From Neoechinorhynchus agilis (Eukaryota; Animalia; Acanthocephala), in assembly GCA_051530055.1 (NCBI GenBank), contig CM121341.1, forward strand, positions 11,076,784 through 11,140,783: DNA of 64,000 nucleotides. The letters run 5' to 3'. The position numbers and the translations under genes are program-made. Shown piece after piece: positions 5,740 through 63,785 of this stretch. Each line of letters begins with the position of its first letter. Position 1 is the first letter of the stretch. The notes beneath the pieces were generated by a model. It was not told the origin of the DNA. It worked only from the letters and a program-made list of their open reading frames with translations, and made no database searches.

Positions 5740-6530
5740 ATAGACCCATTCCTGACAGCGAGAATTCGTAACTCTTTAATTTCAGATTCTCGTGATCTGG
5801 TACACCGAACTCGATTGGCGCCAGTCTCTAAAAGAGAATCGAGTGCTTGGCTCAACCCTATCCCAATCGCTTCTGTGGGTACCCTTCTCTCCGACGTGAC
5901 AGTAACGATTGTAGTGTCCCCGATACTTGGAGTGCCGATGTACACATCCCATCGCTCCCGTTGCGGAGCGACTGCGGAACCATCGGGACGCCATGGTCTC
6001 GTCTGTCAGAAATCAGATGGAAGGTACTCACGACACGCCGAAGTGAATGCAATTCTTAGCCGTGCCCTGAATACTGTGAATGCGCCCAACATTCTAGAGC
6101 CGAGCAATCTTTGCCGATTCGATGGCCGCCGTAGACCGGACGGTGTCACAGTATTCCCGTGGCGAGAATGAAAATGCCTTCTCTGGGTCGCCGCGTTCGT
6201 GGACACGCTCGCAGCCAGCAACATAAAATTCGCCACTGATAAACCGGAGGGGGGGCGCAACCGCGGCCGAGGACCGCAAAAGGACAAAATACAGGGACCT
6301 GAATCGAAATCATTATTTTATTCGCGGCGCAGGACCTGATCAAGCAATTGTCGAAGAGATTGAGACGATTCACTGGCGACCCGAGGGCAGGAGCATTCTC
6401 CTACAAAACATAAGTCTGCCCCTTCAACAAGGGAATGCTGCATCCGTCCTTTCGAACATTACACCAGGAAAGAAGCTGAGTGATCCAGAGCGGTGGTGCG
6501 AATGATCTAACGTGTTATATAAATTTCAAT
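5740..6530 (+). mobile_element. CRE-clade (restriction-like endonuclease) non-LTR retrotransposon, 3' fragment
   Basis: CHC zinc finger (CGA...GRHGLVC), RHAEVN, LEPSNL.RFDGRRRPDGVTVFPW (PD-type nuclease), QRGNAAS terminus. Frameshifted. Confidence 0.8.
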
Positions 6531-16290: not shown

Positions 16291-16854
16291 TGTTTACTAT
16301 ACTTAGAAAGCATATTAAAAATACATGGCGCATTTCTAACGTATCGGTCAGAATTGTTTCACTATTCGATCATATGCTTGGTTTTCTCAATTTCTTCGAC
16401 GGAATCCCGAAAGACTGCTAGACTTCTGGCGAGCGAAATTTCTTGAGTCCATCTGCTATTCGACTGACGATGCACCAATGTCGTTGTATTTTTGATATGG
16501 AGTGATTACTGTGGCCTTCCGATTTATAATTAGAAGTTTATTTCCTCCTCACCATAGAAATAGCATCTTAATTGCAGTGCATTATTTGCGCTGCAGGCTG
16601 TGGTTAGTAATTTTTATTTCTTAAGTTTTCGCTTTGAACCGAATACGTACTCAACCGCTGAAGTTTTGCCATGAAAATTGGAATTTCGCAGTTGGTATAA
16701 CTTCATGCTGGCAGTGGGAGACGGGTGACTGAGAATGAGTAAGTTCGGAGACTTATAAAGGAAACGCACGCGCAGAAATGCCGATTGATCTTTTTTGTTG
16801 AACTTCGAAAAGACTGTGTCGCTTTGACTCTTTATTTTAGACACTTGATCGATA

Positions 16855-27909: not shown

Positions 27910-29615
27910 GACGAAACCTCACGAACTATTCGTCTCAAACATCCCAGTGACGGCGGTGGACAGTATTTCGAAGAATCCTCGTGATGACAATCTCATTATT
28001 TGCTAACGGATCAGCTCACGATCTTGACGGACTCCGGCCCCAACACCTAAAGGATATGAATTCCTTTTGAGTAGGTGACGCTGCTCAATTCCTTCAAGAT
28101 GCATTGGCACATCTAGTCGATTAATTTGCAATGGGAGAGTTAATTCCTAGGGGACTTCACCTCCGTTGTTGTTCAATAACCACGTTTTGTGGTCAGAAAC
28201 AGGAGTTCAACAAGATTATCCTTTAAGCCCAATAGCCTTCTCACTCACTCAGGTAACCCTTCTGTAGTACTGCTCGATTTGGAGACACTCATGAAGAAGA
28301 CGACGAGAATTGACATTGAATTGAATGTTGCGAGATGCGAGATTTCAGTGATGCAAACTATCGTGAACGATTTTCAGGACCTGGCCGCTGGGGTAGAATT
28401 GATCATTCTGAACCGGTTGAGTCTTCTAGACAGCTATATTTTTGGTTCTAATGTTCAAGCAGATTTTGCTAATCTTCAACCGCAACTTTCAGTGCTGTTC
28501 GAACGAGTTGATTATTTATCCTCACGTGAGGCTCTGTTCCTGATCAAGAACACCTTTTTCATTCCAAAATTGCTCTTTAAGCTGCGCACGCACACAAGAC
28601 GGTGAAAGCCTCTATCGAAAAATTTTAAATGCTCATTTGTTGGACGAGGCCTTACGTAAAGCGTCCTTGCCTGTGTCGTCTGGTGGTTTGGGTATCCAAA
28701 AAGCAGCCGATATTTCTGTCAGCTTATGTGGAATCGTATGAATCAAATCGCAAAATAGTTCAGTCATTTCTTAGCGTTGATTACAGGTTGGATGGAGATT
28801 TCGTGGAGGCTATTAATCTTTGGAGTGAATATAATTTGGATAGTAGATACCCGTCAATGGCCGCAAACAACCAGTTTGGGCTCACCCCTGGTAGCCACAA
28901 GTGATAACTCTTTAATTTCAAATTCTCGTGGCCCGGTGAACTGAACTCGATTGACGGTAGTCTCGACTAGAGTATAGGGTGCTTGGCTCAACGCTCTCCC
29001 AATCGGTTCTGTGGTTACCCTTCTCTCCGACGAGACAGTAAGGATTGCAGTGTCCCTCAGACTTCAGGTACCGATGTGCATATCTCATCGCCGCCGTTGC
29101 GGAGCGACCGTGGAACCTTCGGGACACCATGGTCTCGTCTGTCAGAAACCAGATGCGTCGAAGTTCTAAGTAGTTCCCTGAATACTGTGGATGCGCAGAA
29201 CATCCTAGAGCCGAGCAATCTTTGCCAACTCGATGACCTCAGACCGGACGGTGTCACAGTATTCCCGTGGCGAGAAGGCAAATGCCTTGTCTCGGGTGGA
29301 CACGCTCGCAGCCATCAACATACAATTCGGCATCATTAAACCAGGGGGAGCAGTAACCTCGGCTGAGAACCGCGAAAAGACAAAATACCGCGGCCTTGGT
29401 TGAAATCATTATTTTGTTTCCTTTGGCATCGATGCACTTGGGTCGTTTAATATCTCGGCGCAGAACCTGGTCAAGCAATTGTCGAAAAGACTGAGACGAT
29501 TCACTGGCGATCCGAGGGCAGGAGCATTTCTGCTGCAAAAACTAAGTCTAACTGTCTTTTCTTTCAACCAGGACGGCAGCTGAGTGATCCAGAGCGGTGG
29601 CGTGAATGATTTATT
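27910..29615 (+). mobile_element. CRE-clade non-LTR retrotransposon, RT to 3' end, internally deleted
   Basis: DGLRPQHLKDM, AWLNALP, LEPSNL...DDLRPDGVTVFPWREGKCL. 3' end ctgagtgatccagagcggtgg is shared with the 6480 and 8100 copies. Confidence 0.85.
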
Positions 29616-35850: not shown

Positions 35851-36149
35851 ACATTATATAATTCAAAGATATATACCAGCACCAGCTTTAAAGTTTGTCG
35901 AATAAAATTCATAATCTTAACAATGGATGATCGTGAAATACTGTAAAAATAAAATAACTTACCAGAATATCAAAAGACGTCCTAAAAAATCATAACAGAC
36001 CATTGAAATAACATAGAGCAAAGAATTCCAAGCAGTAATTGAAGTTTACGGAATGATTCTCTTGAATTCGATAAAAAAATTATTATTTGATTTCAAAGTA
36101 AACTGCCACGACTAAAGAAATCGCTGTTTAGTCGAAAATACATTTAAGA

Positions 36150-37266
36150 ATTGTCGATGGGATCCAATAAATAAGCGGTACAGTTTATTGCGTTTTGACT
36201 AGAAATTAAGAGAATTTTTGCAAAAACAGAAGCAATTTTGCCTTTTCCAGACGCTTTTATAGAATTCGTTTTTGTTGTGAACTTTTGCTTCACCATAAAG
36301 AAATAAAAATATCGCCTAATTGATTATCCTTTGTTTTTGCAGCAGAGTTTATTTGTTTAGCAGTTCAATGTCGGATGCAGGATGAGCGTCCAGTTTTAAA
36401 AATCCGAAAGCTCAGCATTGCACCCTATGATTTTGCTCCCGAAAACGATGCAACCGAAGTTATTAAGAGCTTAAGGCAGAGAAGACGTTTAGAACAAAAT
36501 ACAGGAATTGTCGATGGGTTTTAATGAATATTCGAAAGATTTACAAGCGTTTTGCTTATAAATGGCGAGAATTTCCATAAGAACGAATCATTTTTCCTTT
36601 TGCTTAACGCTTTTATAGAATTCGTTTTTGTTGTGAACTTTTGCTTCACCACAAAGAAATAAAAATATCGCCTAAATGATTATCCTTTGTTCTTGCAGCG
36701 GAGTTTATTTGTTCAGCAGTTCAATGTTGGATGCCGGATGAGCGACCAGTTTAAAAAATCTGAAAGCTCAGCATTGCATCCAATGATTTTCCGCCCGAAA
36801 ACGATGCAACCGTGAGAAACCACGAGACGCCAAGGTATTAAGAGCTTAAGGCAGAGAAAAATTTTTGAACAAAATACAGGAATTGTAAAGGAATTTAATG
36901 AAAATACGAAAGATTTGCAGGCGAATTGATTGGAAATGCAGAGAATTTTCAGAAAAAACGAATCCATTTTGCTTTTTCCTAATGCTTTTATAGAATTCGT
37001 TTTTGTTGTGACCTTTTGCATCACCATAAAGAAATATAAATATCGCAAAATTGATTATCCTTTGTTTTTGCAGCGGATTTTATTTGTTTAGCGGTTCAAT
37101 GTTGGATGGAGGATGAGCGACCAGTCTAAAAGATCCGAAAGCTCTGCATTGCGCCCTATGATTTTGCTCCCGAAAACGACGCAAAAGCGAGAAACTACGA
37201 GACGCCAAATTTTAAAAAGCTTAAGGCAGAGAAGACGTTAAGAACAAAATACAGGAATTGTCGATT
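36150..37266 (+). repeat. ~375-bp satellite array 1 (~3 units)
   Basis: Unit markers ttgctcccgaaaacga, agagcttaaggcagagaa, ttagaacaaaatacaggaattg and gaattcgtttttgttgtga. Confidence 0.92.
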
Positions 37267-38339
37267 GTAACAAATGCACGAAGAACTTGTATTGACCTTA
37301 TTAATTTAAGATTATGTGCTGTTTGTTTATTTTAAAACGCTGAGGTGTCGATTAATACTCAGTGAATAGCTGTCTATAAGTCAAATCTCGTTTTCAATTC
37401 GTGTAAATTCCTCCATAATTTAAAATTGCAATGTTTTCTTTATGACCCTATGGAAGTTGCACGCCTATTCACTGCCGCAACTACATATTCCGGCGGTTTT
37501 TCTTATTGCTTTACCAATTCGGTAGTTGAATAATAAAATCAATGACCGCTCCTCAGGTTTCGCTTTGGCACTACGCTCATTCGTTGTTTGATCAGACGGT
37601 GCGATACGCAAGTTCGGTGCCAAGATCGAGACAGCACAGGAATCCACGAACTCGATTGCCCAAAGACTATAACCGGGCACAATCGCCACTGCCTGGTAAA
37701 TACTCTAAAACGTAGGGTTTTGGTAACGACATTCCATCTCTCTTCGAGGAGATCAGTTTTAGAAGAGACAGTGGGAAAAGACTTTGCGGCGCATTAACAG
37801 TTCCGGGGGGCCCAAAAACGATTGCTAATAGCGAATTGTAGCTTGGAGTCTCCGGAGTGAATTGGTGAAAACGGTAAAAGTTCAATAAAAGAGAATTACG
37901 AATTTTTCGATTCGTCGTGTGACAATTAGTCGTTCGCATCAGCGATTTTGAAAGGGATACTGAATGTATCATCGAGGCAATGCAGGATAAAGATCTTCCT
38001 CCATTCTTATCGGAACCTTTATAAATTGGATATAAAAAAATTTCTCTCAAAAAGTTGAAATCGATTTCGAAAAATTTACCATAATATAGCATTGTGTAAA
38101 CCACAAAATCCTGGTTTCGATTTCTAACTTGTACCTTAAAATTTTTTTAAATTCGATTCATAAGCCCCATAAACTTATGTTTATTTTACTCTAATGAATT
38201 GCTGTTCATCATCTTCGTTAGAAAGGCATTTTGTTAGTCGAAATGTTCAAAATGTTTTAATTGTATATGGATTTTGGACGGAAATACGAGGAAGTCAGTT
38301 TTATTTCTATGGGCGCTCTTTTTAAAAATGATATTGGAC
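37267..38339 (+). repeat. Conserved ~1.07-kb tail following the satellite (copy 1)
   Basis: Collinear and highly similar to 47989-49102. Its reverse complement is partly present at 56322-56925 and 60518-60786. Confidence 0.9.
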
Positions 38340-44945: not shown

Positions 44946-47900
44946 GCGTCAGAGAATTTTCAGAAAAAAGCGAAGCGATTTAGCGTTTTCCTAACGCTTT
45001 TATACAATTGATTTTTGTTGCGAACTTTTGCATCACCATAAAGAAATAGAAATACCGCAAAATTGATAAAAAAAATCAATTTTGCGCTTTCGTAACGCTT
45101 TTATAGAATTCGTTTTTGTTGTTAACTTTTGCATGACTATAAAGAAATAAAAATGTCGCCTAATTGATTTTAATTTGTTTTTGCAGCATATCTTGTTTGT
45201 TTAGTGGCTCAATGTTGCATGCAGGACGAGCGATTACTTAAAAAAATTCGAAAGCGCTGCATTGCACCCTATGATTTTGCTCCCGAAAACGACACCGCCG
45301 CGGGTAACCACGAGACGAAAAAATTATAAAGAGCTTAAGGCAGAAAAGACGTTTAGAAAAAAATACAGGAATTGTAGACGGGTTTTAATGAATATACGAA
45401 AGATTTACAAGCGTTTTGCTTAGAAATGGAGTGAATTTTCAGAAAAAAACGAACCAATTTTGTGTATTCCTAGCGCTTTTATAGAATTGGTTTTTGTTGT
45501 GAACTTTTGCATTACCATAAAGAAATAAAAATATCGCAAAATTGATTATAATTATTTTTTGCAGCGGATTTGATTTGTTTAGCGGTTATATGTTGGATGC
45601 CGAATGAGCGACTAGTTTAAAAATCTGAAAGATCAGCATTGCACCCAACGATTTTGCTCCCGAAAACGACACCCCCGCGAGAAACCACGAGACGCCAAAT
45701 TTTAAAGAGCTTAAGGCAGAGAAGACGTTTAGAACAAAATACAGGAATTGTCGATGGGTTTTAATGAATATTCGAAAGATTTACAAGCGTTTTGCTTAGA
45801 AATGGATAGAATTTTTAGAAAAAAGCGAAGCAATTTACCTTTTACCTAACGCTTTTATGGAAGTCGTTTTTGTTGTGAACATTTGCCTTACCATAAAGAA
45901 ATAAAAATATCGCCTAACTAATTATCCTTTTTTTGCAGCAGATTTTATTTGTTTAGCAGTTCAAAGTTGAATGCATGATGAGCGACCAGTTTAAAAACAC
46001 TGAGAGCACAGCATTGCACCCTATGATTTGGCTCTCGAAAACGACGCCGCGGCGAGAAACCACGAGACGCCAAATTATAAAGAGCCTAAGGCAGAGAAGA
46101 CGCTTAGAACAAAATACAGGAATTGCAGATGGGATTTTATGAATATACGAAAGATTTGCAAGCGAATTCCTTTGAAATGGAGAGAATTTTCAGAAAAAAT
46201 GAATAAACTTGCTTTTTCCTAACGCTTTCATGGAATTCGTTTTTGTTGTGAACTTTTGCATGACCATAAAGAAATAAAAATGTCGCCTAAATGATTTTAA
46301 TTTGTTTTTGCAGCGTAGTTTATTTGTTTGGCGGTTCAATGTTGGATGCAGGATGAGCGACCAGTTTGAAAAATCCGAAAGCTCAGTATTGCACCCTATG
46401 ATTTCGCTCCCGAAAACGAAGCAGCCGCGAGAAACTACGAGCCGCCAAATTTTAAAGAGCTTAAGGCAGAGAAAAATTTAGAACAAAATACAGGAATTGT
46501 CGATTGAGTTTAAAGAGAATACGGACGATTTTCAGGCGAATTGGTTAGAAGTGGAGAGAATTTTTAGAAAAAAGCGAAGCAATTTACCTTTTTCCTAACG
46601 CTTTTATGGAATTCGTTTTTGTTGTGAACATTTGCATCACCACAAAGAAATAAAAATATCGCCTAATTGATTATCCTTTGTTTTGCAGCGGAGTTTATTT
46701 GTTCAGCAGTTCAATGTTGGATGCCGGATGAGCGACCAGTTTAAAAAATCTGAAAGCTGAGCATTGCACCCAATGATTTTGCTCCCGAAAACGACGCAAC
46801 CGCGAGAAACCACGAGACGCCAAATTATTAAGAGCTTAAGGCAGAGAAAAATTTAGAACAAAATACAGGAATAGTAAAGGAATTTAATGAAAATACGAAA
46901 GATTTAAAGGCGAATTGATTAGAAATGGAGAGAATTTTCTGAAAAAAGCAAAGCAATTTTGCTTTTTCCTAATGCTTTTATAGAATTCGTTTTTGTTGTG
47001 AACTTTTGCATTACCGTAAAGAAATAAAAATATCGCAAAATTTATTATAATTTGTTTTTGCAGCGGATTTTATTTGTTTAGCGGTTCAATGTTGGATGAA
47101 GGATGAGCGACCAGTTTAAAAGATCCGAATGCTCTGCATTGCGCCCTATGATTTCGCTCCCGAAAACGAAGCAGCCGCAAGAAACCACGAGCCGCCAAAA
47201 GGCAGAGAAAAATTTAGAACAAAATACAGGAATTGTCGATTGAGTTTAAAGAGAATACGGACGATTTTCAGGCGAATTGATTAGAAGTGGAGAATTTTTA
47301 GAAAAAAGCGAAGCAATTTACCTTTTTCCTAACGCTTTTATGGAATTCGTTTTTGTTGTGAACATTTGCATCACCACAAAGAAATAAAAATATCGCCTAA
47401 TTGATTATCCTTTGCTTTGCAGCGGATTTTATTTATTCAGCAGTTCAATGTTGGATGCCGGATGAGCTATCAGTTTAAAAAATCTGAAAGCTCAGCATTG
47501 CACCCAATGATTTTGCTCCCGAAAACGACGCAACCGCGAGAAACCTCGAGACGCCAAATTATTAGGAGCTCAAGGCAGAGAAAAATTTAGAACAAAATAC
47601 AGGAATTGTAAAGGAATTTAATGAAAATACGAAAGATTTGCAGGCGAATTGATTAGAAATGCAGAGAATTTTCTGAAAAAGCGAAGCAATTTAGCTGTTT
47701 CCTAATGCTTTTATAGAATTCGTTTTTGTTGTGACCTTTTGCATCACCATAAAGAAATATAAATATCGCAAAATTGATTATCCTTTGTTTTTGCAGCGGA
47801 TTTTATTTGTTTAGCGGTTCAATGTTGGATGAAGGATGAGCGACCAGTCTAAAAGATCCGAAAGCTCTGCATTGCGCCCTATGATTTTGCTCCCGAAAAC

Positions 47901-47988
47901 GACGCCGCCGCGAGAAACCACGAGACGCCATATTTTAAAGAGCTTAAGGCAGAGAAGACGTTAAGAACAAAATACAGGAATTGTCGAT
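44946..47988 (+). repeat. ~375-bp satellite array 2 (~8 units)
   Basis: cccgaaaacga (or a one-base variant) at ~45281, 45659, 46033, 46409, 46783, 47159, 47518 and 47892. Confidence 0.96.
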
Positions 47989-49102
47989 TGTAACAAATGC
48001 ACGAAGAACTTGTATTAAGCTTATTAATTTAGGATTATGTGCTGTTTGTTTATTTTAAAACGCTGAGGTGTCGATTAATACTCGGTGAATAGCTGTCTAT
48101 AAGTCAAATCTCGTTTTCAATTCGTGTAAATTCCTCCATAATTTAAAATTGCAATGTTTTCTTTATGACCCCAAGGTGCCGCAACTAAATATTCCGGCAG
48201 TTTTTCTTATTGCTTTACCAATTCGGTAGTTGAATAATAAAATCAATGACCGCTCCTCAGGTTTCGCTTTGGCACTACGCTCATTCGTGGTTTGATCAGA
48301 CGGTGCAATGTGCAAGCTCCGTGCCAAGATCGAGACAGCACAGGAATCCACGAACTCGATTGCCCAAAACTATTTATGGGCACAATGGTCACAGCATGGT
48401 GAATCCTCTGAAACGTAGGGATTTGGTTACGACATTCCATCTCTCTTCGAGGAGATCAGTTTTAGAAGAGATAAGGAAAAGATCTAGCAGCGCATCAACA
48501 GTTCCGTGGGGCCCGAAAACGATTGATAATAGCGAATTGTCCCTTGGAGTCTCCGGAGTGAATTTTCGAAAATGGTGGAAGTCCAATAAAAGAGAATTAC
48601 GAATTTGTCGATTCGTCGTTGTACATTTTCCAAACTCTCGCCATTGTGACAATTGGTCTTTGAAGTTTTAGCCAAGATTTTAAAATGGTTGATCGCATCA
48701 GCGATTTTGAAAGGGATACTGAATGTATCATCGAGGCAATGCAGGATAAAGATCTTCCTCCATTCTTATCGGAACCTTTATAAATTGGATATTAAAAAAT
48801 TTCTCTCAAAAAATTGAAATCGATTTCGAAAAATTTACCATAATATAGCATTGCGTAAAGCACAAAATCCTGGTTTAAATTTCTAACTTGTACCTTAAAT
48901 TTTTTAAAATTCGATTCATAGGCTCCATAAACTTCTATTTATCTTGCTCTAATGAATTGCTGTTCATCATTTTCGTCAGAAAGGCATTTTGTTAAAGTCG
49001 AAATTTTTAAAACTTTTCGAATTGTATATGGATTCTTGACGGAAATACGATGAAATCAGTTTCATTTCTATAGTTGCCTTTTTTTAAAAAATGATATTGG
49101 AC
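47989..49102 (+). repeat. Conserved tail following the satellite (copy 2)
   Basis: Same junction gtcgattgtaacaaatgcacgaagaacttgtatt and same end aaaaatgatattggac as copy 1. Confidence 0.9.
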
Positions 49103-50413: not shown

Positions 50414-52291
50414 TTATAAAGTAAATCCAGTTAACAGATAGAGGATATCAGAGACGTACGACGGGACAGAATTCTCTTCTTCATCTTTCGATTCAAAATA
50501 TACAAACGAAGTCAAATCGCATATCCGCGCTTCAACAGCGTCCACGCTAATGGCTTCGCGTACAAAGTCTAAAACTTGATTAAGATCGTCTTCACCAATT
50601 CCAAGAACAAGCCTCAAGTTTTTAGATGAGATATTTCTGTGCATTCGACTTATACATGAGAGATTGTGGAATCTCAGAACGCGTTGAAGCTCTTCTTTGG
50701 GAACCGATAATGTTTTATCATCAATGTAGTTAGAAGTATTTTCCCAGAACCGGTACATGATCTCGATATGGTCAAATGGAATCAATCGTGGAACGAAGAA
50801 GTTCTTTAGAAGACCGTAGCATTCCTTATCCAATTTATCCGCAAATCCCTTCTCAAATATCTTCAAAAATAAATTTTGTCTTTCTGTGAGATATATTGGA
50901 CTCAATAGAGCACAACGAATTAGCTGGTTTCCTACTAATTCAGCGCATTCATCTCATTGCTCGTTTGTCTTTTTGAGGAGCGAAGAGTCATTTAATAGAA
51001 TGGACAAAAATCGTTAAAATATAGCTAATTAAAACAGTATTTAAAGCTGATGATTTCGAATGCTAATTACTACAATGCAGGTCGTTAAATCTAACAATTT
51101 TTCCAGAACGTGCTTAAAAACGCGATGATTTCACTAATTAAATATCAAATGTTTGCTGACCAATATTTCGGATTAATAGCTATTAAGAAGCAAATTGCAA
51201 TTCTGGTAAATAGATTAAAGCTCGCAATGCAAAGGCCCAAGAGATATTTCTAAAAAATTACAAAAGTACTAATTGGCTTCTGCTAGCTTAAGCATCCTTA
51301 GAGACGACAAATATTTTTATATCATAAAGAAGATCGATATTAAATGGCAGTTCGTACTATACAGCCAAAACATTGAATGATGTCGATAAATATTTTGATT
51401 TTCCAGTGGCAAATAGAACAGACGAATCAATTAATAATCCGAATAAGTTCTTTTAAATTTTGAGTTGATTTTCCTTCTTGGAAATACCACGTTCACTTTT
51501 AAGTCAACAAGACAAACGACACTGTTCCGCTGCGCGAGTTCTAAATACTCCATTCCAGCTCGAATGTAAAATTGTTCATTATAGAAAAATCGCGCTGTTA
51601 GGTCAACATAGCAATCAAATAGAAACGGGTGTTCTTCTATTAATCTGGTATTATTCTCAAAGGCCATTTTTATGACTTTAAGAGCAGTTTCAGCAGACTT
51701 GCTGTCGTTTCGAAAAATAGCAATCTTGGCTGAGATTAAGAAAGCTCGTAATTCATCAACGAACGTTCGGTAGCTAAACGCGTGAAACACAGCAATGGTC
51801 TTTCCGGCATCTTCTATCTGACCCAATCTTAAAAGAATTGATGAAAAAATAATACAGGCTTTAGGAAGAAGCCCTTGATGTGTTTTTTGACCGAATTTGC
51901 CTAAACGAACGAAAATAAAGTATACGAGCACTGCGAAGTCATGGGAAGAGAGTCGGGATAGGTCAATGGACAAATTTGTCGTCTTAAAAGGTACTCTGTC
52001 GAACACACCGATTGGGAAATGTTGTATCAGATTGAAGTCCATGAGTGAGCAGAGAATTGAGTTTGCTTGTTCGGTCTTTGTTGAGTATGACGACGATTCA
52101 GGGCCGATTGCATGGTAGACGATTACAAGCAGGGAGTGAAGGCAATTATCCGAAGATTGAATGTACGACAAAGCATCGTCGAATTCCGGAAGGGATCGTG
52201 CGTCCAGTTGGTTAATGAGGTCCGATATTTGTGGAGAAGATCGCAGAAGATGATTGTATTTCAACAGAATGGATTCCAACTCTTGTAACAT
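50414..52291 (-). CDS. COPS4: PCI-domain protein, most like COP9 signalosome subunit 4
   Basis: ELRAFLISAKIAIFRNDSKSAET, FYIRAGMEYLELA and FHNLSCISRMHRNIS...ARICDLTSFVYFES align with CSN4 motifs. Rpn5/PSMD12 is not excluded. Intron between ~51495 and ~50940. Confidence 0.6.
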
Positions 52292-53249: not shown

Positions 53250-53680
53250 GATCAGGGAAGCGCGTAAAATAACTTAATACCCTGAAGCATACGATTGTGA
53301 GTTTTGTGCATCCCCGTTCGGACCCTCAGATACCCCCCAATGAGGCGAGACTCGTCATTGAGTTTGTTCCATTCAACAGGGCATTTTGTTTCCTTTCCTT
53401 GTGAGCCATTGATGATTGTGGATGGATTATGTCCACTAAACCACCTCGGCACAACTATGGAATGTGCAAATTCTGCCAGTTTTATACCGTCTAGTGAACT
53501 TTTGCCCCGAATCCAAGTTTCATGATCAAAGGGTTCAAATCCACAATCGCCAATGACTCACTAGGAAAGGAAACGAAATACATCGTTGAAGGAAGAAGGA
53601 AACTCGCTGATGAGTCTCGCTTTCTCGGAAGTTATTTGAGAACCCAGACAGAGATGTACAAACTCTTAACCGTATTATTA
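53250..53680. mobile_element. Two inverted LINE 3'-end remnants (53250-53400 +, 53565-53670 -)
   Basis: aaaataacttaata.cctgaa.catacg matches 1248-1275. Translations EARLVIEF and ARLISEF match the family C-terminus. Confidence 0.7.
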
Positions 53681-53854
53681 TAATTTTGGTGAACATACTC
53701 CCGGTCATAACCTATTTGATTTTGATTTATTGTATCGCGAAATATTTCCAATAAATCAAAATCAAATACGCTATTAGAAAATTAACAATTGAAAAATCTC
53801 AATTTATTTTATTGTGCGTTTGTCATGACCTCTTGCTCTTCCCATTACCCTCTT

Positions 53855-55772
53855 TCAATTTTCCTTCTTTTTCGTTTCTAGGCCATCCTTGAACTGACCG
53901 AATCTCAAGCGACGTATTGTAATGATCGTTAAGAATAAACACAAAAATCCAGCAAACACAAGTACCGGTTGAATCAAAACTGCGTACCAGGGAACTAAGA
54001 AAGTGATCTTTAGGAGAAGCAGTCAGCAAGTTTTTGTAAACAAATATACGCATGTACCTCAATGAACTTGGTCGAATGCACATTAACAAGGTTTGACTTT
54101 GAAAGAACAATAGTTGGTTTTCCCCGGATAATATCCAAATATCCATAAGTGACGTCATTGGGCAATCGATCAAATCTGTACGGAGTATTAATATCTACGA
54201 TTCTGAATAACAAGAAAAAAAGATAGCGAAAAGTCCACTTGAGCTAACTTTGATTCCCTTGGAAGGGCTATTCTGAGTTCGAGGTGCTCTACGTTCTGAT
54301 TATCCATCAAACTATCCATTATTCTAACTCTCAGTTTGTACTCGTTGCCTTTTCAGAAAAGAAAAATGAAATAGGACAAATAAAAATATAAACGCAACTC
54401 ACCTTTACGCCTTAGGATGAGATTGCGCCTCAACGTGTAGCCAACAGTGTAACTAGTCCTCCAGCCACCGAACAACGGAAACCTCGGTCGAAGGTCCAAT
54501 ACCATCTCTTTTCCACTGAATCGAACAGTACTGGTCGATATATTTCCAAGATGATCTCTATAAAAGACATGCCTCGACTTCTGAGGCAGTCTCATTTCAA
54601 ATACTTCTACAGCACTGTCCGATTGTCCTGATGCGAATTTTATCGATCGAAACATATGAGTTTGTCGCGAAAACCCAGATGAAAGCTTCGCCCCGCAATG
54701 AAAGAGATCGTTCACCTGATTTCTAAAGATCACATCGCCAAAACTGGTAACTTCAACGTATCGAACGACGTCTCTGACTTTAAGAAACGGCGCATTGTTC
54801 TCATAATGAACACTAAATTTGTCGTAGGATAAAGGCGGTCGTTCATTTGGAAACGAGTATGAAATGGACGTCTTGTCTGGTCGATTGTGCGGCTGTGGGT
54901 TTGCTTCGATAACATTCGGTGACCAAAGATTGTATTGGGTTTCTTCGTGTATTGCGAAAGATCGATCATTTAAAGAATTAATGTTCGTATTTAAAAGATT
55001 TCGGTATGAACTAAGAATCGAAGAAAAATCTCAAACAATACGCATCGAAAATTAGTCAAAATGAGAGCTTCTGAACTGTTGACTATAGTGGTCGATAAGC
55101 GCAATTTTCCTATAAGAACGATTATAAAGCAGTCGTGCCGATAAGTAGAATCCACCTTTCCGCTAATAAAGTTCTAAATTAATTTTCGGAGTAGAGGTAT
55201 TATTCCAACATTGGTAGTCTTCAATGTAGGACTCCAAACGCACGTAAATGCTCCACAAATCAAAACTTTTAACGATTATAGAACTACCAAGAGAAAATCG
55301 ACAACGAATTGATCGTTCGCTTTAGCGTTTTATAAGGCGAGTAAAAATAAAGATTTCCTTCGTATCGGACGAACTGTGATTCAGTCTGAACGATTTTTTC
55401 AGGTAAAATTTGGTATAAATCGGTATAAATGGCATCAACTACAATCTTTACATAATCACTTCCGTTGAGCTTTAAAGCAACAGAGCATTTAACGTTTGAT
55501 TGACAGCTAGAAAAATCTTCAATAATCTCAGCTGGCCCGTTATCCACTGAGGCAGCTAAATAAGCAATCTTACCAATCAACCGCGGTTCTATCAGGTATT
55601 CGTAATCCGTTTCGGAGTTCGCATTTCCGGCTATGATTGTAGTTCTCGAGCGAACAAGCTGCGACGAGAGATCGAATTCACGCGATACCCTCTTGTTTAT
55701 GAAACTATTTGCTTCGATGGCCAAACTTAGAAACGTGAGAAACGAGAAGAGAGAAAATGAGCAGAAATCCAT
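53855..55772 (-). CDS. RPN1: Oligosaccharyltransferase subunit ribophorin I, multi-exon
   Basis: Signal peptide MDFCSFSLFSFLTFLSLAIEA; QFVRYEGNLYFYSPY; VHYENNAPFL; LRPRFPLFGGWRTSYTVGY; YGYLDI.RGKPTIV; TM IQPVLVFAGFLCLFLTIITIRRL; stop TGA at 53855. Confidence 0.92.
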
Positions 55773-56039
55773 CAAAGCGCTTATGTATACCACGGAATTC
55801 TGCTTAGTTTTTAATAAAATGAAGACTTTGAAACGTCACATGAACGAAGTTTTGGTTTTTCAGATCGATAGCGCGTTTTTAAAATTATTGGAAATAAGAA
55901 TGGTCACTCGGAAGGTCATAACAAAAAGCAAAAAGAAAAATGCTACGATTTATCCTTATTACATTCTCATTATTTCCAAAACAAAACACAGAATCGTCAT
56001 TTCTTAGCAAAGAGGAGTTGATTCTTTCGTTTAGTCGTT

Positions 56040-56925
56040 ACTTGCCATCGACATGCCCGCAATTTTGTTATAGACATCGTCGCTTCTGTCCTAAGCTCTC
56101 TATAAAAAGCACGCCCCGTGGTTTTCTGCGGTGGTGTCGTTAGAGGGAGCGAAATTATGGGGTGCAATGGTGAGCTTTCAGATTTGTAAGCTGTATGCTC
56201 AATCCTGCATCCAACATTGAACCGCTGCGCAAACCGAGTTGGGGATTGTTACGCCATTTCTGAATCTTTGCTGAAACTTCTGCGATGCTTGGTCGAACGG
56301 CATCAATTTTCCCGCACTTTTCACTCCGGAGACTCCAAGGGACAATTTGCTCTTAGCAATCGGTTTCGGGCAAATGAAGTCCAAAGGAGACTGCTCCTTT
56401 CCCACGGAACTGTTGCTGCGCCGCCAGGTCTTTTCCCACCATCTCTTCTAAAACTGATCTCCTCGAAGAGAGATGGAATGTCGCTACCAAAACCCTACGC
56501 TTTAGAGTATTCACCAGGCAGTGGCGATTGTGCCCGGTTATAGTTTTTGGGCAATCGAGTTCGTGGATTCCTGTGCTCTCTCGGTCTTGGCACCGAACTT
56601 GCATATCGCACCGTCTTATCAAACCACGAATGAGCGTAGTGCCAAAGCGAAACCTGAGGAGCGGTCATTGATTTTATAATTCAACTGCCCAATTGGTAAA
56701 GCAATAAGAAAAACTGCCGGAATATTTAGTTGCGGCACCTTGGGGTCATAAAGAAAACATTGCAATTTTAAATTATGGAGGAATTTACACGAATTGAAAA
56801 CGAGATTTGACTTATAGACAGCTATTCACCGAGTATTAATCGACACCTCAGCGTTTTAAAATAAACAAACAGCACATAATCTTAAATTAATAAGCTTAAT
56901 ACAAGTTCTTCGTGAATTTGTTACA
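56040..56925 (-). repeat. Reverse-orientation tail (56322-56925) plus one diverged satellite unit (56040-56240)
   Basis: Reverse complement of 37267-37860. gcagcggttcaatgttggatgcagga...gaaagctcaccattgcacc matches the satellite unit. Confidence 0.85.
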
Positions 56926-59485
56926 ATCGACAATTCCTGTATTTTGTTCTTAGCGTCTTCTCTGCCTTAAGCTCTTTAATATATGGCGTCTCGTGGTTTC
57001 TCGCGGCGGCGGCGTTTTCGGGAGCAAAATCATAGGGTGCAATGCTGAGCTTTCGGATCTTTTAAACTGGTCGCTCATCCTTCATCCAACATTGAACCGC
57101 TAAACAAATAAAATCCGCTGCAAAAACAAAGGATAATCAATTTTGCGATATTTATATTGCTTTATGGTGATGCAAAAGGTCACAACAAAAACGAAGTCTA
57201 TAAAAGCATTAGGAAAAAGCAAAATGGATTCGTTTTTTTCTGAAAATTCTCTGCATTTCCAATCAATTCGCTTGCAAATCTTTCGTATTTTCATTAAATT
57301 CCTTTACAATTCCTGTATTTTGTTCTAAATTTTTCTCTGCCTTGAGCTCCTAATAATTTGGCGTCTCGTGGTTTCTCGCGGTTGCGTCGTTTTCGGGAGC
57401 AAAATCATAGGGTGCAATGCAGAGCTTTCGGATCTTTTAAACTGGTCGCTCATCCTTCATCCAACATTGAAGCGCTAAACAAATAAAATCCGCTGCAAAA
57501 ACAAAGGATAATCAATTTTGCGATATTTATATTTCTTTATGGTGATGCAAAAGGTCACAACAAAAACGAATTCTATAAAAGCATTAGGAAAAAGCAAAAT
57601 GGATTCGTTTTTTTCTGAAAATTCTCTCCATTTCCAATCAATTCGCCTGCAAATCTTTCGTATTTTCATTAAATTCCATCGACAATTCCTGTATTTTGTT
57701 CTAAATTTTTCTCTGCCCCAAGCTCTTTATAATTTGGCGTCTCGTGGTTTCTCTCGGTTGCGTCGTTTTCGGGAGCAAAATCATTGGGTGCAATGCTGAG
57801 CTTTCAGATTTTTTAAACTGGTCGCTCATCCGGCATCCAACATTGAACTGCTGAACAAATAAACTCCGCTGACAAAACAAAACATAATCAATTAGACGAC
57901 ATTTTTGTTCTTTACGGTGATGAAATGTTCACAGCAAAAACGAATTCCATAAAAGCGTTAGGAAAAAGAGCAAAATTGCTTCTCTTTTTTCTTAAAAATT
58001 CTCGCCATTTCGAATCAATTCGCCTGTATATCTTTCGTATTTTCATTAAATTCCATCGACAATCCCTGTATTTTGTTCTAAACTTCTCTGCCTTAAACTC
58101 TTTAAAATTTGGCGTCTCGTGGTTTTTCGCGGCGGCGTCGTTTTCGGGAACGAAATCATAGGGTGCAATGCTGAGCTGTCAGAATTTTAAACTGGTCGTT
58201 CATCCTGTATCCAACATTGAACTGCTAAACAAATAAAATCTGCTGCAAAAAAAGGATAATCAGTTAGGCGATATTTTTATTTCTTTACGGTGATGAAATG
58301 TTCACAACAAAAACGAATTCCATAAAAGCGTTAGGAAAAAGGTAAATTGCTTCGCTTTTTCAGAAAATTCTCTGCATTTCTAATCAATTCGCCTGCAAAT
58401 CTTTCGTATTTTCATTAAATTCCTTTACAATTCCTGTATTTTGTTCTAAATTTTTCTCTGCCTTGAGCTCCTAATAATTTGGCGTCTCGTGGTTTCTCGC
58501 GGTTGCGTCGTTTTCGGGAGCAAAATCATTGGGTGCAATGCTGAGCTTTCAGATTTTTTAAACTGATAGCTCATCCGGCATCCAACATTGAACTGCTGAA
58601 CAAATAAACTCCGCTGCAAAGCAAAGGATAATCAATTAGGCGATATTTTTATTTCTTTGTGGTGATACAAATGTTCACAAAAAAAACGAATTCCATAAGA
58701 GCGTTAAGCAAAAGGAATAATGATTCGTTTTTTATGGAAATTCTCGCCATTTATAAGCAAAACGCTTGTAAATCTTTCGAATATTCATTAAAACCCATCG
58801 GCAATTCCTGTATTTTGTTCTAAACGTCTTCTCTGCCTTAAGTTCCTAATAATTTGGCGTCTCGTGGTTTCTCGCGGTTGCGTCGTTTTCGGGAGCAAAA
58901 TCATTGGGTGCAATGCTGAGCTTTCAGATTTTTTAAACTGATAGCTCATCCGGCATCCGACATTGAACTGCTGAACAAATAAACTCCGCTGCAAAGCAAA
59001 GGATAATCAATTAGGCGATATTTTTATTTCTTTGTGGTGATACAAATGTTCACAACAAAAACGAATTCCATAAAAGCGTTAGGAAAAAGAGCAAAATTGC
59101 TTCTCTTTTTTTCTTAAAAATTCTCGCCATTTCGAATCAATTCGCCTGCAAATCTTTCGTATTTTCATTAAATTCCATCGACAATTCCTGTATTTTGTTA
59201 TAAAATTTTTCTCTGCCCCAAGCTCTTTATAATTTGGCGTCTCGTGGTTTCTCGCGGTTGCGTCGTTTTCGGGAGCAAAATCATTGGGTGCAATGCTGAG
59301 CTTTCAGATTTTTTAAACTGGTCGCTCATCCGGCATCCAACATTGAACTGCTAAACAATTAAAATCTGCTGCAAAAAAAAGGATAATCAGTTAGGCGATA
59401 TTTTTATTTCTTTACGGTGATGAAATGTTCACAACAAAAACGAATTCCATAAAAGCGTTAGGAAAAAGGTAAATTGCTTCGCTTA
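56926..59485 (-). repeat. ~375-bp satellite array 3, inverted relative to arrays 1 and 2 (~7 units)
   Basis: tcgttttcggga(g/a)c recurs at ~57015, 57387, 57763, 58138, 58507, 58883 and 59263. Confidence 0.95.
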
Positions 59486-59512
59486 AGAGAAAATCGACAA
59501 CGAATTGAACGT

Positions 59513-59968
59513 TCACTTTAGCGTTTTATAAGGCGAGTAAAAATAAAGATTTCCTTCGTATCGGACGAACTGTGATTCAGTCTGAACGATTTTTTCAGGT
59601 AAAATTTGGTATAAATCGGTATAAATGGCATCAACTACAATCTTTACATAATCACTTCCGTTGAGCTTTAAAGCAACAGAGCATTTAACGTTTGATTGAC
59701 AGCTAGAAAAATCTTCAATAATCTCAGCTGGCCCGTTATCCACTGAGGCAGCTAAATAAGCAATCTTACCAATCAACCGCGGTTCTATCAGGTATTCGTA
59801 ATCCGTTTCGGAGTTCGCATTTCCGGCTATGATTGTAGTTCTCGAGCGAACAAGCTGCGACGAGAGATCGAATTCACGCGATACCCTCTTGTTTATGAAA
59901 CTATTTGCTTCGATGGCCAAACTTAGAAACGTGAGAAACGAGAAGAGAGAAAATGAGCAGAAATCCAT
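59513..59968 (-). CDS. RPN1: Duplicated RPN1 exon 1 with its promoter: alternative first exon, truncated 151-aa product or pseudo-exon
   Basis: 59486-60596 is a near-identical copy of 55290-56400 (offset 4196 bp). It reads MDFCSF...YSPYKTLK then TGA. Confidence 0.9.
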   Translation of the reverse strand: MDFCSFSLFSFLTFLSLAIEANSFINKRVSREFDLSSQLVRSRTTIIAGNANSETDYEYLIEPRLIGKIAYLAASVDNGPAEIIEDFSSCQSNVKCSVALKLNGSDYVKIVVDAIYTDLYQILPEKIVQTESQFVRYEGNLYFYSPYKTLK

Positions 59969-61827
59969 CAAAGCGCTTATGTATACCACGGAATTCTGCT
60001 TAGTTTTTAATAAAATGAAGACTTTGAAACGTCACATGAACGAAGTTTTGGTTTTTCAGATCGATAGCGCGTTTTTAAAATTATTGGAAATAAGAATGGT
60101 CACTCGGAAGGTCATAACAAAAAGCAAAAAGAAAAATGCTACGATTTATCCTTATTACATTCTCATTATTTCCAAAACAAAACACAGAATCGTCATTTCT
60201 TAGCAAAGAGGAGTTGATTCTTTCGTTTAGTCGTTACTTGCCATCGACATGCCCGCAATTTTGTTATAGACGTCGTCGCTTCTGTCCTAAGCTCTCTATA
60301 AAAAGCACGCCCCGTGGTTTTCTGCGGTGGTGTCGTTAGAGGGAGCGAAATTATGGGGTGCAATGGTGAGCTTTCAGATTTGTAAGCTGTATGCTCAATC
60401 CTGCATCCAACATTGAACCGCTGCGCAAACCGAGTTGGGGATTGTTACGCCATTTCTGAATCTTTGCTGAAACTTCTGCGATGCTTGGTCGAACGGCATC
60501 AATTTTCCCGCACTTTTCACTCCGGAGACTCCAAGGGACAATTTGCTCTTAGCAATCGGTTTCTGGCAAATGAAGTCCAAAGGAGACTGCTCCTTTCCCA
60601 CGGAACTGTTGATGCGCTGCTAGATCTTTTCCTTATCTCTTCTAAAACTGATCTCCTCGAAGAGAGATGGAATGTCGCTACCAAAACCCTACGTTTCAGA
60701 GGATTCACCATGCTGTGACCATTGTGCCCATTAATAGTTTTGGGCAATCGAATTCGTGGGTTCCTGTGCTCTCTCGGTCTTGGCAAGTTATTAAACTAAG
60801 GGATTGAAAAGCAATGAGAAAAACCAAAGGAGCATTTGGTTGCGGTAGCGAACCAAGGCAGTTTAGGAATTCTATCTAAAATCAAGGGTCTGACCAACGT
60901 TTTTTTTGTATTGTGATAGTTTGAGTACTTCATTTTTCTAATCGAAGTCGATAAGATTAGTCGTTAATTTAAGATTGCTAGGAATGGCTGCCTTGCGATT
61001 TTGGCGCTGAGCAACGTTCGAGTGAGCTGGCCAAGTGGTTTTATCAAGCGTAGCTGCACAACTCGACGTTGCTAGTGGTCGTTTATTCCGCTAGAAAAAG
61101 TCGATGGGAACGAGGAGCTCGAAGCATTTCGATAATTTGTTGGTCCGGCCGAAGGAGTTTATCCATGCAAGCAGTCAAATAGCACCGCGGATGCTACCGT
61201 CCTCTAATTTTTCAGATCTTCGTCTTCCGAACGCTTAGTTCGAGGACTCTTGGACACTACAATTGACAGAATAGTGTAGGAAGTACTTGCAGCGTTAATC
61301 GGGTGGCTTAAAGAGGTTGTAGGTTGTACTCACGGGACACGCAATGAAGTTTTAGCGAACCCGAGAAGGAGTGTCCACAGGATTTCGCCTGGAGGCTCTT
61401 CATTAACCGCCTCGATCAAGTCTCCGAGTTTCACCACTATCATAAATCTCGCTGACGAAGAATACATCGGATTAAGCGAGCGTTCTATGCTGGGAGGTTT
61501 CGTAGCGCAGCCAAATCCTCATTGATTTGATCGATTGTGGGTGTAACATTTTCCTGGCACACCTCATTGATTGCAGGAAGGGTACTCGAATGTGGCTTAT
61601 GGGAGCCGGAACATTTGGATCCTCGACGGTGACCGAACACTGTTATTGGCCGTTGTTTCGTGATTATCGGTTGTCCCACGTCGACCTTCCTTTTCCCGTT
61701 TTCTTTGCGCATTGTTCCCAACATCATCAAGCGAAAATCCTTCGGGATGATAGAATTGCTGTGATAATAATCCCTGTTTCATCCGGGAACCACAACTACA
61801 CTCAATATTTATTCTCAAAAATTCACT

Positions 61828-62658
61828 TTATTCGACGTCCAAATTATCCATACCGCGCGGATCGTCCGATCGCTCACACTCTTCGCACATTATCTTTCCC
61901 TTTTCCGTTCCATAAACTCGGAGCTGCGTACTCATTGTTCTGTTACAAAACCCGCATACAAAACACTCGGGACAATAGGATTGAGCGCGACATACGATTC
62001 GAAGGTCTTTCAGTTTCAACTTTTTGCCACATTGAACGCATTCATCGACCATTGCGTCCTGACATTTTAAACAAAACACTTGACTTCCTACTCTTAAAAT
62101 ATCCATTTCCTCAATCTTTTTATTACAATGCTCACAAAAAAAGCAGTCTGCATGGAAGAGTGTCGAATCGTTCATCAAAACAACTTCTCCTTCTTCAATA
62201 AGTTTCTTACATTGGAAACAATCCTTTTCAGTGATCATATCAGCCGCACCGAACACACGAACTGAACAACAATCTGAACAATTCAAATCATTGTTGTCTC
62301 GTACAAAGTCTGTATTTTCCAACCGCTTCTCGCATTTTTTGCACTTTAGACAATCATAATGAACAAAATCATTGCGACCAATTACTAGCGTTTGTTGTTC
62401 TCCTTCAAAAAGCAGTTGATTGCATACTACGCATTTCAGATTCGAACTACACTGTGAACAATAAATAAGAAATTCGTCATTCGAGGACGTGGATATGCAC
62501 TTCATTAAATATCGACTTTGTTTCATGTTTTCACCGCAATCAGCGCATTTTAGACAATCCGCATGAATACGAGTATCGTTCACTAAAACGTGATCTTTTA
62601 AATCGCGGATTTCTAATTTGCAAATTGGACATCTAAATGAGTACTTGGAGGACAGCAT
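61828..62658 (-). CDS. Multi-LIM-domain protein (about four LIM domains)
   Basis: Repeated CxxC...HxxCxxCxxC...CxxC units (HADCLKCADC, HYDCLKCKKC, FHADCFFCEHC, YCPECFVCGFC). C-terminal exon structure uncertain. Confidence 0.88.
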   Translation of the reverse strand: MLSSKYSFRCPICKLEIRDLKDHVLVNDTRIHADCLKCADCGENMKQSRYLMKCISTSSNDEFLIYCSQCSSNLKCVVCNQLLFEGEQQTLVIGRNDFVHYDCLKCKKCEKRLENTDFVRDNNDLNCSDCCSVRVFGAADMITEKDCFQCKKLIEEGEVVLMNDSTLFHADCFFCEHCNKKIEEMDILRVGSQVFCLKCQDAMVDECVQCGKKLKLKDLRIVCRAQSYCPECFVCGFCNRTMSTQLRVYGTEKGKIMCEECERSDDPRGMDNLDVE

Positions 62659-62809: not shown

Positions 62810-63785
62810 GAGGAAATAGAGATTCATTTATTAATTCCCTTTGTGGCAATATTTAGTCCGTATCGTTGGACTTTTTCAGGTTGTAAAAGTGTTTAATGCG
62901 CACTTGAACGTCAGTTCAGAATTTTGATTTTTTAGTAAACAGATAAACCAAGGATCTGTTTGGTTGTTGTAAAGAATTTGTTTCATGGATGTATTTTGTT
63001 CGGTGTGATATAGAGATTTATTAATTCCTTTGTGACAATATTTCGTCCGTTTCGTTGAACTTTTTCATGTTGCAAAAGTGTTTAATCCACACTTGAAATC
63101 TCAGTCCACAATTTTGATTTTTTAAAAAACGGATTAACCAAGGATCTGTTTTGTTCCTGTAAAGAATTTGTTCATTCATGTATTTTGTTTGATGTGATAT
63201 AGAAATTTATTAATTCCTTTTTTGACAATATTTCATGAGTTTCGTAGGACTTCTTCAGGTTGTAAAAATGTTTAATCCGCATTGGAAATCTCAGTCCAGA
63301 ATTTTGATCTTTTTTTAATAAACAGGTAAACCAAGAATCTGTTTGGTTGTTGTAAAGAATTTGTTTCATGGATGTATATTGTTTGGTGATATAGAGATTA
63401 ATTAATTCCTTTTTTGACAATATTTCATCAGTTCCGTAGGAATTCTTCAGGTTGCAAAAGTGTTTCATTTTCAAGCGCCGATTAAACACTTTTACAACCT
63501 GACGATACGGACGAAATATTGTCAAAAAAGGAATTATTAAATCTCTAAATCAGACGAAATAAAATTCATCCATGAACAAATTCTTTAAAACAATTAAACA
63601 GATCCTTGGTTTTTCTGTTTACTAAAAAAATCAAAATTATGGATTGATGTTCAAGTGCGGATTAAACACTTTTACAATTTGAAGAAGTCCCACGAAACGG
63701 ACGAAATATTGTCACAAAGGGAAATAATCAATCTCTATATCACCAAACAAAATATATCCATAAACAACTTCTTTACAACCACCAC
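62810..63785. repeat. ~190-bp tandem units arranged as a foldback about ~63473
   Basis: tagagatt..ttaattcc...gacaatatttc...caggtt(g)caaaagtgttt runs forward at ~62815, 63012, 63200 and 63392. The reverse complement runs at 63481-63660 and 63661-63785. Confidence 0.9.

Follow-up and report, generated by a model that had tools for sequence, protein, structure and literature searches.

Partial tandem duplication of the RPN1 5′ end across a satellite array in the acanthocephalan Neoechinorhynchus agilis

The RPN1 gene and its duplicated 5′ end

The window analyzed here, 64 kb of nuclear DNA from Neoechinorhynchus agilis (Acanthocephala; CM121341.1 of assembly GCA_051530055.1, with positions counted from the first letter of this whole stretch), carries on its minus strand a gene that is, by homology, ribophorin I (RPN1/OST1), the upstream region and first exon of which stand in two copies 4.2 kb apart. 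From the proximal ATG to the stop codon (53855–55772, minus strand), the RPN1 gene was modeled in this analysis as five spliced exons (55772–55321, 55010–54403, 54348–54249, 54202–54058, and 54007–53855) encoding 485 a.a. The best match of the modeled product was the N. agilis hypothetical protein ACOME3_002603 (PF04597), encoded on CM121341.1 over the same range, below which came several hundred RPN1 orthologues and OST subunit 1 proteins at 30–36% identity. The search returned 557 matches at E ≤ 0.001, with PF04597 carried by 120 of the 120 listed; among the matches listed, the best outside N. agilis reached E = 4.9e-75, and a single deposited N. agilis protein, without close relatives, was present. 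The orthologue alignment contained 61 invariant columns, and we noted both the luminal-domain homology and the single C-terminal transmembrane segment that define membership of the ribophorin I/OST1 family. The C-terminus of the N. agilis protein (53855–54007) extends ~20 residues past the transmembrane segment (...KDGLETKKKEN); the cytosolic tail of ~140 residues found in the vertebrate and mollusc orthologues is missing, as it is from those of insects and tardigrades.

The proximal exon 1 (55321–55772, minus strand) runs from a signal-peptide-like N-terminus through the conserved ...QFVRYEGNLYFYSPYKTL, a motif kept in 10 of 10 aligned homologues, and corresponds to human RPN1 residues 25–168 (PDB 6s7o chain E; E = 4e-13, obtained with the distal copy, which is identical, as the query). 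The best-conserved stretch of the RPN1 N-terminal half is QFVRYEGNLYFYSPYKT, which matches human RPN1 (6s7o) and all 10 aligned orthologues. In the deposited annotation, the gene begins at the proximal ATG (55772), and there are no genes between this position and the upstream neighbor that bounds the distal side, a single-exon LIM-domain gene (PF00412; 61828–62658, minus strand), hence none on the distal copy.

Using BLASTN, we found that the segment 55289–56592 recurs at 59485–60785 (1304 bp, 98.1% identity). The first-pass annotation, made from the sequence alone, had described 55290–56400 and 59486–60596 as near-identical and proposed a partial tandem duplication of the RPN1 promoter and exon 1 across a satellite array. 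BLASTN and Tandem Repeats Finder (TRF) together bear out this proposal, and the range given approximates a core of 1127 bp (55289–56415 proximally, 59485–60611 distally) comprising 32 nt of intron 1, exon 1, ~550 bp of upstream sequence, and the first 96 bp of a repeat head, H, described below. Base-by-base comparison of the cores revealed four substitutions (proximal/distal: 55313 T/A, 55319 G/A, 56076 A/G, and 56368 G/T), a divergence of 0.35%. All 452 nt of exon 1 are identical in the two copies, the distal exon 1 (59517–59968, minus strand) being unannotated and having the same coding sequence as the proximal one. The remaining tail of the match (56416–56592) holds 21 differences versus 4 in the core (Fisher p = 1.6e-15). 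The copies are separated by 333 bp of non-tandem sequence (56593–56925) and a 375-bp satellite; the presence of a satellite array at this place, as first proposed, was confirmed by TRF.

Read along the gene strand, the distal part comprises the LIM-domain gene, a degenerate remnant of H, a segment of H of a second type (H′, type II), the upstream region, exon 1′, and 32 nt of intron; the proximal part then follows with the satellite array, H (type I), the upstream region, exon 1, the full intron 1, and exon 2 onward. The outer flanks are natural in that intron 1 continues past the proximal copy and the LIM-gene side continues past the distal copy, and the added material amounts to 4196 bp (array, H, upstream region, exon 1, and 32 nt of intron). 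The reading that we favor, with about as much confidence as doubt, is a recent, repeat-mediated partial tandem duplication of the RPN1 5′ end in which the proximal copy stays the working first exon. Under this reading, the distal copy would be an orphan first exon equipped with its own copy of the upstream region.

Intron 1 donors and the prospects of the distal exon

With donor (b), described next, intron 1 spans 310 nt (55011–55320, minus strand), the first 32 nt of which (55289–55320) are duplicated; its acceptor, ttcgattcttag|T at 55011, is shared by the deposited model (intron AG at 55012–55011, exon 2 from 55010). Three candidate donors on the minus strand precede this acceptor in the proximal copy. 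Donor (a), ACA|GTTCGT (55373–55374; distal equivalent 59569–59570), is the one used in the deposited BRAKER model. Candidate donor (b), AAA|GCGAAC (55319–55320), has GC rather than GT, and read-through (AAG CGA) stays open. Candidate donor (c), TTG|GTAGTT (55286–55287), lies 33 nt downstream of (b) and begins 1 nt outside the duplicated segment, so that it exists in the proximal copy only; its use replaces one residue (N) by 12 (KRTINSLSIFSC), a net gain of 11. The distal counterpart of (b), candidate donor (b′), AAA|GTGAAC (59513–59516), has a GT (59516–59515) that overlaps a TGA stop codon (59515–59513). All four sites are in phase 2, matching the acceptor at 55011, giving the layout of tandem first exons with same-phase donors upstream of a common acceptor.

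The difference between (b) and (b′) lies in a single position. The minus-strand sequence is TATAAAACGCTAAA|GCGAACGA in the proximal copy and TATAAAACGCTAAA|GTGAACGT in the distal one, the differing position (55319/59515) being the second base of the putative intron; the reading of both copies upholds the earlier report of GT versus GC at this candidate donor. In the T state (distal), a GT donor is present and read-through gives AAG TGA, a stop 151 codons from the ATG at 59968, which agrees with the 151-aa product previously predicted from the unspliced distal copy (CTA AAG TGA). In the C state (proximal), the donor is lost, AAG CGA takes its place, and the frame stays open for 11 more codons to the next in-phase GT.

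For reference, we assembled nine introns from the deposited models in the window (five in a cullin gene, three in RPN1, and one in a CSN4-like gene) by mapping the deposited cullin and CSN4-like proteins; the donor and acceptor scores derived from this tiny training set are rough. Ab initio intron discovery with two scripts gave mostly false positives and was discarded. A G at −1 is found in eight of the nine annotated donors and, among the intron 1 candidates, in donor (c) only, and AAA|GCGAAC and AAA|GTGAAC each score below all nine annotated donors (a very small training set). GC–AG introns are the commonest non-canonical U2-type class, and the proximal site resembles them in its GC (55320–55319), normal AG acceptor, and right phase. 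However, GC donors normally need a G at both −1 and +5, and typical ones are near-perfect elsewhere (−1 G, AAGT at +3 to +6); AAA|GCGAAC does not show this compensating consensus, and RPN1 also has the alternative in-phase GT 33 nt downstream. The proximal intron 1 donor is, in short, weak under every reading.

Given that QFVRYEGNLYFYSPYKT is the best-conserved stretch, the donor must lie at or after it, and keeping this peptide would take either the GC at 55320 or the GT at 55287 as the proximal donor. The deposited ACOME3_002603 instead reads ...QTES|HSYRN, splicing at 55374 and losing 18 conserved residues (QFVRYEGNLYFYSPYKTL plus one; 55321–55374). We consider donor (a) a probable annotation error caused by a true donor that is non-GT or weak, judging from the conserved peptide that it removes. 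The GTTCGT hexamer of donor (a) is a genuine donor type in N. agilis, occurring in cullin intron 4. The predicted junctions with exon 2 are CGCTAAA|TTCATACC for (b) or (b′), TCTCTTG|TTCATACC for (c), and AATCACA|TTCATACC for the deposited model.

The first-pass annotation had further suggested that the CSN4-like gene uses the same donor as the distal copy. The shared context is indeed there, with the 11-mer AAAGTGAACGT present at 51499–51489, but the deposited CSN4-like model uses GTG|GTATTT, 9 nt downstream. A single-intron CSN4 model of the annotated length was tried and rejected, with no GT at the implied site. We also observed that this deposited model (ACOME3_002602, 50414–52291) joins ...LVDLKVNV to IFEKGF... 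through an intron at 51487–50861, thereby skipping an open COPS4-like block (DECAELVGNQLIRCALLSPIYLTERQNLFLK) at 50953–50861; no phase-compatible GT/AG pairs that would include this block (50953–50861) were found. Two likely errors in the deposited annotation are flagged by these comparisons, namely ACOME3_002603 without its 18 conserved residues and ACOME3_002602 without a conserved block.

Intron 1 adjoins a 22-residue insertion, NSYRNLLNTNINSLNDRSFAIHE (alignment columns 306–327), that none of the aligned orthologues has. We looked for another acceptor whose use would splice the insertion out; the one further AG (54947) is not in phase. No intron occurs at the intron 1 position in Tribolium (a beetle, with an intronless gene), Paramacrobiotus (a tardigrade), or Liolophura (a chiton), and intron-position conservation consequently fails as a guide to the ancestral donor. 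From these alignments, RPN1 intron 1 may be a young intron that arose from an insertion into an exon, with donors still unsettled. Taken one step further, intron 1 would be young and lineage-specific with its donor in flux, the duplication would hold both the T and the C state, and the upstream GT copy would be taking over; we regard this combined scenario as quite improbable, and, if true, it would be a case of first-exon and donor turnover caught mid-process.

The distal exon 1 has ~640 bp of upstream DNA identical to that of the proximal copy, which makes its transcription plausible. If transcribed, the distal GT donor could reach exon 2, and the resulting mRNA would not differ from the normal one. 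The intervening array presents, in the sense orientation, acceptor-like TTTTTGCAG sites at 59369, 58989, 58614, 58243, 57493, and 57118, and a close variant, TTTTGTCAG, at 57869. The first of these, 59369, is 147 nt past the distal donor, and splicing into it gives AA|C AGA TTT TAA, i.e., three codons and then a stop (predicted junction CGCTAAA|CAGATTTT). Three of the four introns in RPN1 are 46–54 nt long, and three of five in the cullin gene are similarly short; a nearby acceptor should therefore be favored. These motifs make clean distal splicing across 4.5 kb doubtful, and the distal exon would more probably splice into the first satellite acceptor-like site and end after three codons. In neither case would a new protein isoform be expected from the distal copy. 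Exact-product lookups in other assemblies, made with exon 1 open reading frames (ORFs) of 151 and 158 aa for the distal copy and of 162 and 169 aa for the proximal one, came back empty.

A different reading holds that the distal GT copy is, or is becoming, the functional first exon and splices to exon 2 over a repeat-filled intron of 4.5 kb, with the proximal donor lost by a T-to-C change and the proximal copy decaying. It draws on the GT/GC difference at the homologous site, on the poor context of the proximal GC donor, and on the ~640 bp of shared upstream sequence, likely including the promoter, that the distal copy carries; in addition, two of the four core substitutions fall inside the 32-nt intron stub, a clustering of differences at the donor (p = 0.005), and the 164–627 nt introns of neighboring genes mean that not all introns here are tiny. 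However, the distal donor is itself weak (below nine of nine annotated donors), seven acceptor-like sites of the TTTTTGCAG kind intervene before exon 2, beginning 147 nt downstream, and the proximal copy keeps an in-phase GT at 55287 with the frame open up to it. BRAKER, guided by RNA-seq, also set the gene start at the proximal ATG, and neither exon 1 copy shows decay. Such a turnover is, in our view, unlikely.

The first-pass annotation had also raised a secreted, 151-aa N-terminal ribophorin fragment, made from an unspliced distal transcript that stops at GTGA. The ORF is intact, with a signal-peptide-like N-terminus and no transmembrane segment, and its stop codon is made by the same T that makes the donor. 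Yet the product would end in the middle of a conserved luminal region that is uninterrupted in homologues, it is unannotated despite the RNA-seq guidance, there are no substitutions in it to show selection, the exact-product lookups put no such product on record, and a truncation of this kind is what one expects by default of a partial duplicate. We consider the fragment very improbable. As for telling the copies apart in transcripts, the suggestion that diagnostic single-nucleotide differences near the donor would serve for junction reads does not hold, since the differences are intronic or upstream only; with exon 1 identical, spliced reads cannot separate the two copies, and only the variants at 55313/55319, 56076, and 56368 can.

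The composite repeat, the breakpoints, and the origin of the duplication

The satellite between the two exon 1 copies has a 375-bp period, 6.8 copies, and 88% matches (TRF, 56926–59481), and is a head-to-tail array of a fixed-length monomer, as satellite DNA is defined. We place the array at 56926–59484 (6.8 monomers, plus strand), with one TTTTTGCAG per monomer on the minus (RPN1-sense) strand. The 375-bp family forms further arrays, in the opposite orientation, at 36127–37276 and 44951–47999. Next to the array near RPN1 stands the head H (56320–56925, plus strand), which has 87–89% identity to the array-adjoining sequences 37266–37861 and 47989–48562, and the junction between H and the first monomer was identical in all three element copies when aligned. 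The satellite array is one component of a composite dispersed repeat consisting of a ~600-bp head and 375-bp monomers. A second copy of this element lies at 44951–49102 (minus strand; array 44951–47999, head, and ~550 bp more) and a third at 36127–38339 (minus strand; ~3 monomers, head, and ~550 bp more), both in the opposite orientation; we refer to them as the 48-kb and 37-kb copies. The ~550 bp that these two share beyond H extends to 38339 and 49102, respectively, and both copies end ...AAAATGATATTGGAC. Relative to these longer copies, the proximal H is cut off at 56320.

Identity among the element copies is mosaic along H (87–99%), which suggests gene conversion among them, as far as the alignments go. 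The element is like satellites associated with transposable elements in that, at three loci within 64 kb, its 375-bp array meets a non-repeated head of ~600 bp at the same junction; it differs in that the N. agilis element yielded no coding capacity, terminal repeats, or target-site duplications. The array end was rejected as a transposon terminus, as the three arrays stop at different monomer phases and 59484 is not an element end. An RNA gene within the satellite (5S, spliced-leader RNA, small nuclear RNA, or tRNA-derived) was likewise rejected, with Rfam (E ≤ 1) and ARAGORN both empty over 53500–62000. A 21-kb sample of another chromosome gave no matches to the composite element, a single sample that is uninformative on genome-wide spread.

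The duplicated upstream region itself contains an old, diverged partial satellite monomer with ~75% identity (56023–56233 and its twin at 60219–60429, plus strand). We observed an TATAAAAAG motif in this fragment upstream of RPN1 (56095–56105 and 60291–60301, plus strand), directed away from RPN1 and toward the head H and the array; a degenerate form of the motif occupies the equivalent position in the satellite monomers.

The first breakpoint falls in H. The initial 96 bp of H (56320–56415) are 99% identical between the two RPN1-linked copies and contain a 29-bp indel found only in these two and not in the other two. Past this point, the distal segment H′ (60612–60785, plus strand) belongs to another subfamily, with 95.4% identity to the 48-kb copy and 89.7% to the proximal H, and is followed by a degenerate H remnant (60787–60847, plus strand; 70–75% identity) after an 83-bp gap relative to intact H. 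At 19 of the 21 columns that differ from 56416 onward, the distal copy agrees with the 48-kb copy, and at 14 of these 19 sites the proximal copy agrees with the 37-kb copy; proximal 56416–56592 is of the 37-kb type. The divergent tail is, on this site-by-site comparison, two subfamily versions of H and not an older part of the same duplication, which places one breakpoint inside the repeat. The near-identical core therefore ends within H, with the switch in the interval 56369–56415, and a core ending inside a repeat is what homologous recombination, gene conversion, or a homology-guided template switch would leave behind. As the copies switch subfamily inside H, homology-driven recombination or template switching there would have been part of the event.

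The other junction, 59484|59485, is of a different nature. Here, a monomer breaks off at ...gcttcgctt and the intron 1 sequence aagagaaaatcgac follows directly; the last partial monomer equals 58247–58357, where the monomer runs on as tttcagaaaatt. The join (cgctt|aag) is blunt, with no shared bases. An in-register AGAAAAT microhomology had been reported at this place; the heptamer is present on both sides, but it is out of register and 3–4 nt off the breakpoint (4 nt from the break in the satellite, 3 nt in the intron/duplicate). In a simulation, a shared 7-mer this near to the junction arose in 0.36% of random pairings. The nearby AGAAAAT is probably meaningful, e.g., as a trace of priming from an imperfectly annealed end, and is not classical junctional microhomology. 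The earlier proposal of satellite-associated template switching stands insofar as the origin is tied to repeats; the other breakpoint, which that proposal had left unanalyzed, lies in the dispersed head H.

Under the favored repeat-mediated duplication, the duplicated part would run from the upstream region through exon 1 into the first 32 nt of intron 1. The new DNA would have been attached at one end by homology within the dispersed head (56369–56415); at the other, intron sequence would have been joined to a satellite monomer without homology, a 7-nt match lying 3–4 nt away. Two routes may be envisaged. In the first, a single complex replicative event (a template switch or break-induced copying via a neighboring H-plus-satellite copy) would have passed from the intron into the array, copied through H, and returned by homology in H. 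In the second, a larger piece would first have been duplicated by unequal recombination in H, and a deletion reaching from intron 1 into the array would have come next. The H and satellite between the copies resemble the other two element copies at 87–99%, with the exact donor template not identified.

The locus is comparable with products of non-allelic homologous recombination (NAHR) and of fork stalling and template switching (FoSTeS) or microhomology-mediated break-induced replication (MMBIR). As in these, one breakpoint lies in a dispersed repeat with a subfamily change, the other joins non-homologous sequences close to a short homology, and a repeat-derived segment separates the copies. 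A switch matching the crossover within a repeat that marks NAHR was seen at the H end (56369–56415) and not at the satellite/intron end. The overall arrangement may fit a duplication with a templated segment inserted; the junctional microhomology of MMBIR/FoSTeS was not found at 59484|59485. Unlike in those systems, the RPN1 microhomology sits off the junction, and a two-step origin by recombination and deletion fits equally.

Reliability of the assembly and wider setting

The assembly was built with MaSuRCA hybrid mega-reads and Flye, followed by purge_dups and Hi-C scaffolding, with genes called by BRAKER2 with RNA-seq (PMC12690905). An assembly artefact has to be weighed, in which two haplotypes or individuals, one with the type I H-plus-satellite and one with the degenerate type II head, were stitched in tandem and one exon 1 is real. 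The pooled worms, the error-prone hybrid long-read assembly, and the repeat-rich region make this conceivable; the 0.35% core divergence is within the allelic range, and the difference in H subfamily between the two copies is one that alleles or paralogues could show. Conversely, 59484|59485 joins intron to satellite without homology, where a haplotype merge would be expected at shared sequence, no runs of N occur in the window, hence no gaps, and purge_dups had been applied. As a homology-free junction is untypical of assembler collapse or haplotype merging, a real structure is favored, and we rate the artefact as improbable.

Several points tell against the favored reading of a recent duplication with a working proximal exon. 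The source material was pooled worms, sequenced by Oxford Nanopore with sparse HiFi and Illumina data (PMC12690905), and false duplications are a real risk in such pooled hybrid data. As to the order of events, a duplication could have been followed by conversion of H, or recombination in H could have taken place during the duplication, and ongoing gene conversion between older copies could be the source of the high identity. The clustering of substitutions at the donor hints at something non-random there, and the poor GC context could mean that the proximal copy is crippled and the distal GT copy is in use.

In layout, the locus recalls variable-first-exon loci such as UGT1A and the clustered protocadherins, with a tandem upstream region and first exon before a shared exon 2 and a donor-like site of the same phase in each copy. 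The likeness is one of layout only: RPN1 has just two copies with identical coding sequence and hence no protein diversity, and its intervening DNA is a repeat array with many competing acceptor-like sites. The rearrangement is an ordinary kind of partial 5′ gene duplication and involves no new biological principle.

Other repeats were observed elsewhere in the window. A very homogeneous tandem array with a ~300-bp period (~9 copies, 96–98% identity) occupies 13516–16300. A 190-bp satellite (62826–63465, 3.4 copies) is directly followed by an inverted array of the same family (63502–63764), the two forming the arms of a long imperfect palindrome (81–93% complementary). On the minus strand, ORFs at 25262–26923 resemble a retrotransposon pol (reverse transcriptase/RNase H motifs, by eye) and adjoin an 87-bp tandem repeat (26873–27307), and repeats at 5769–6319 and 28905–29415 share ~79% identity.

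The RPN1 locus is a place where the pooled-worm assembly merits checking. If real, it would be a clean, small case of satellite-bearing dispersed repeats remodeling the 5′ end of an essential housekeeping gene, and one in which a single nucleotide couples donor strength with the closure of the reading frame.

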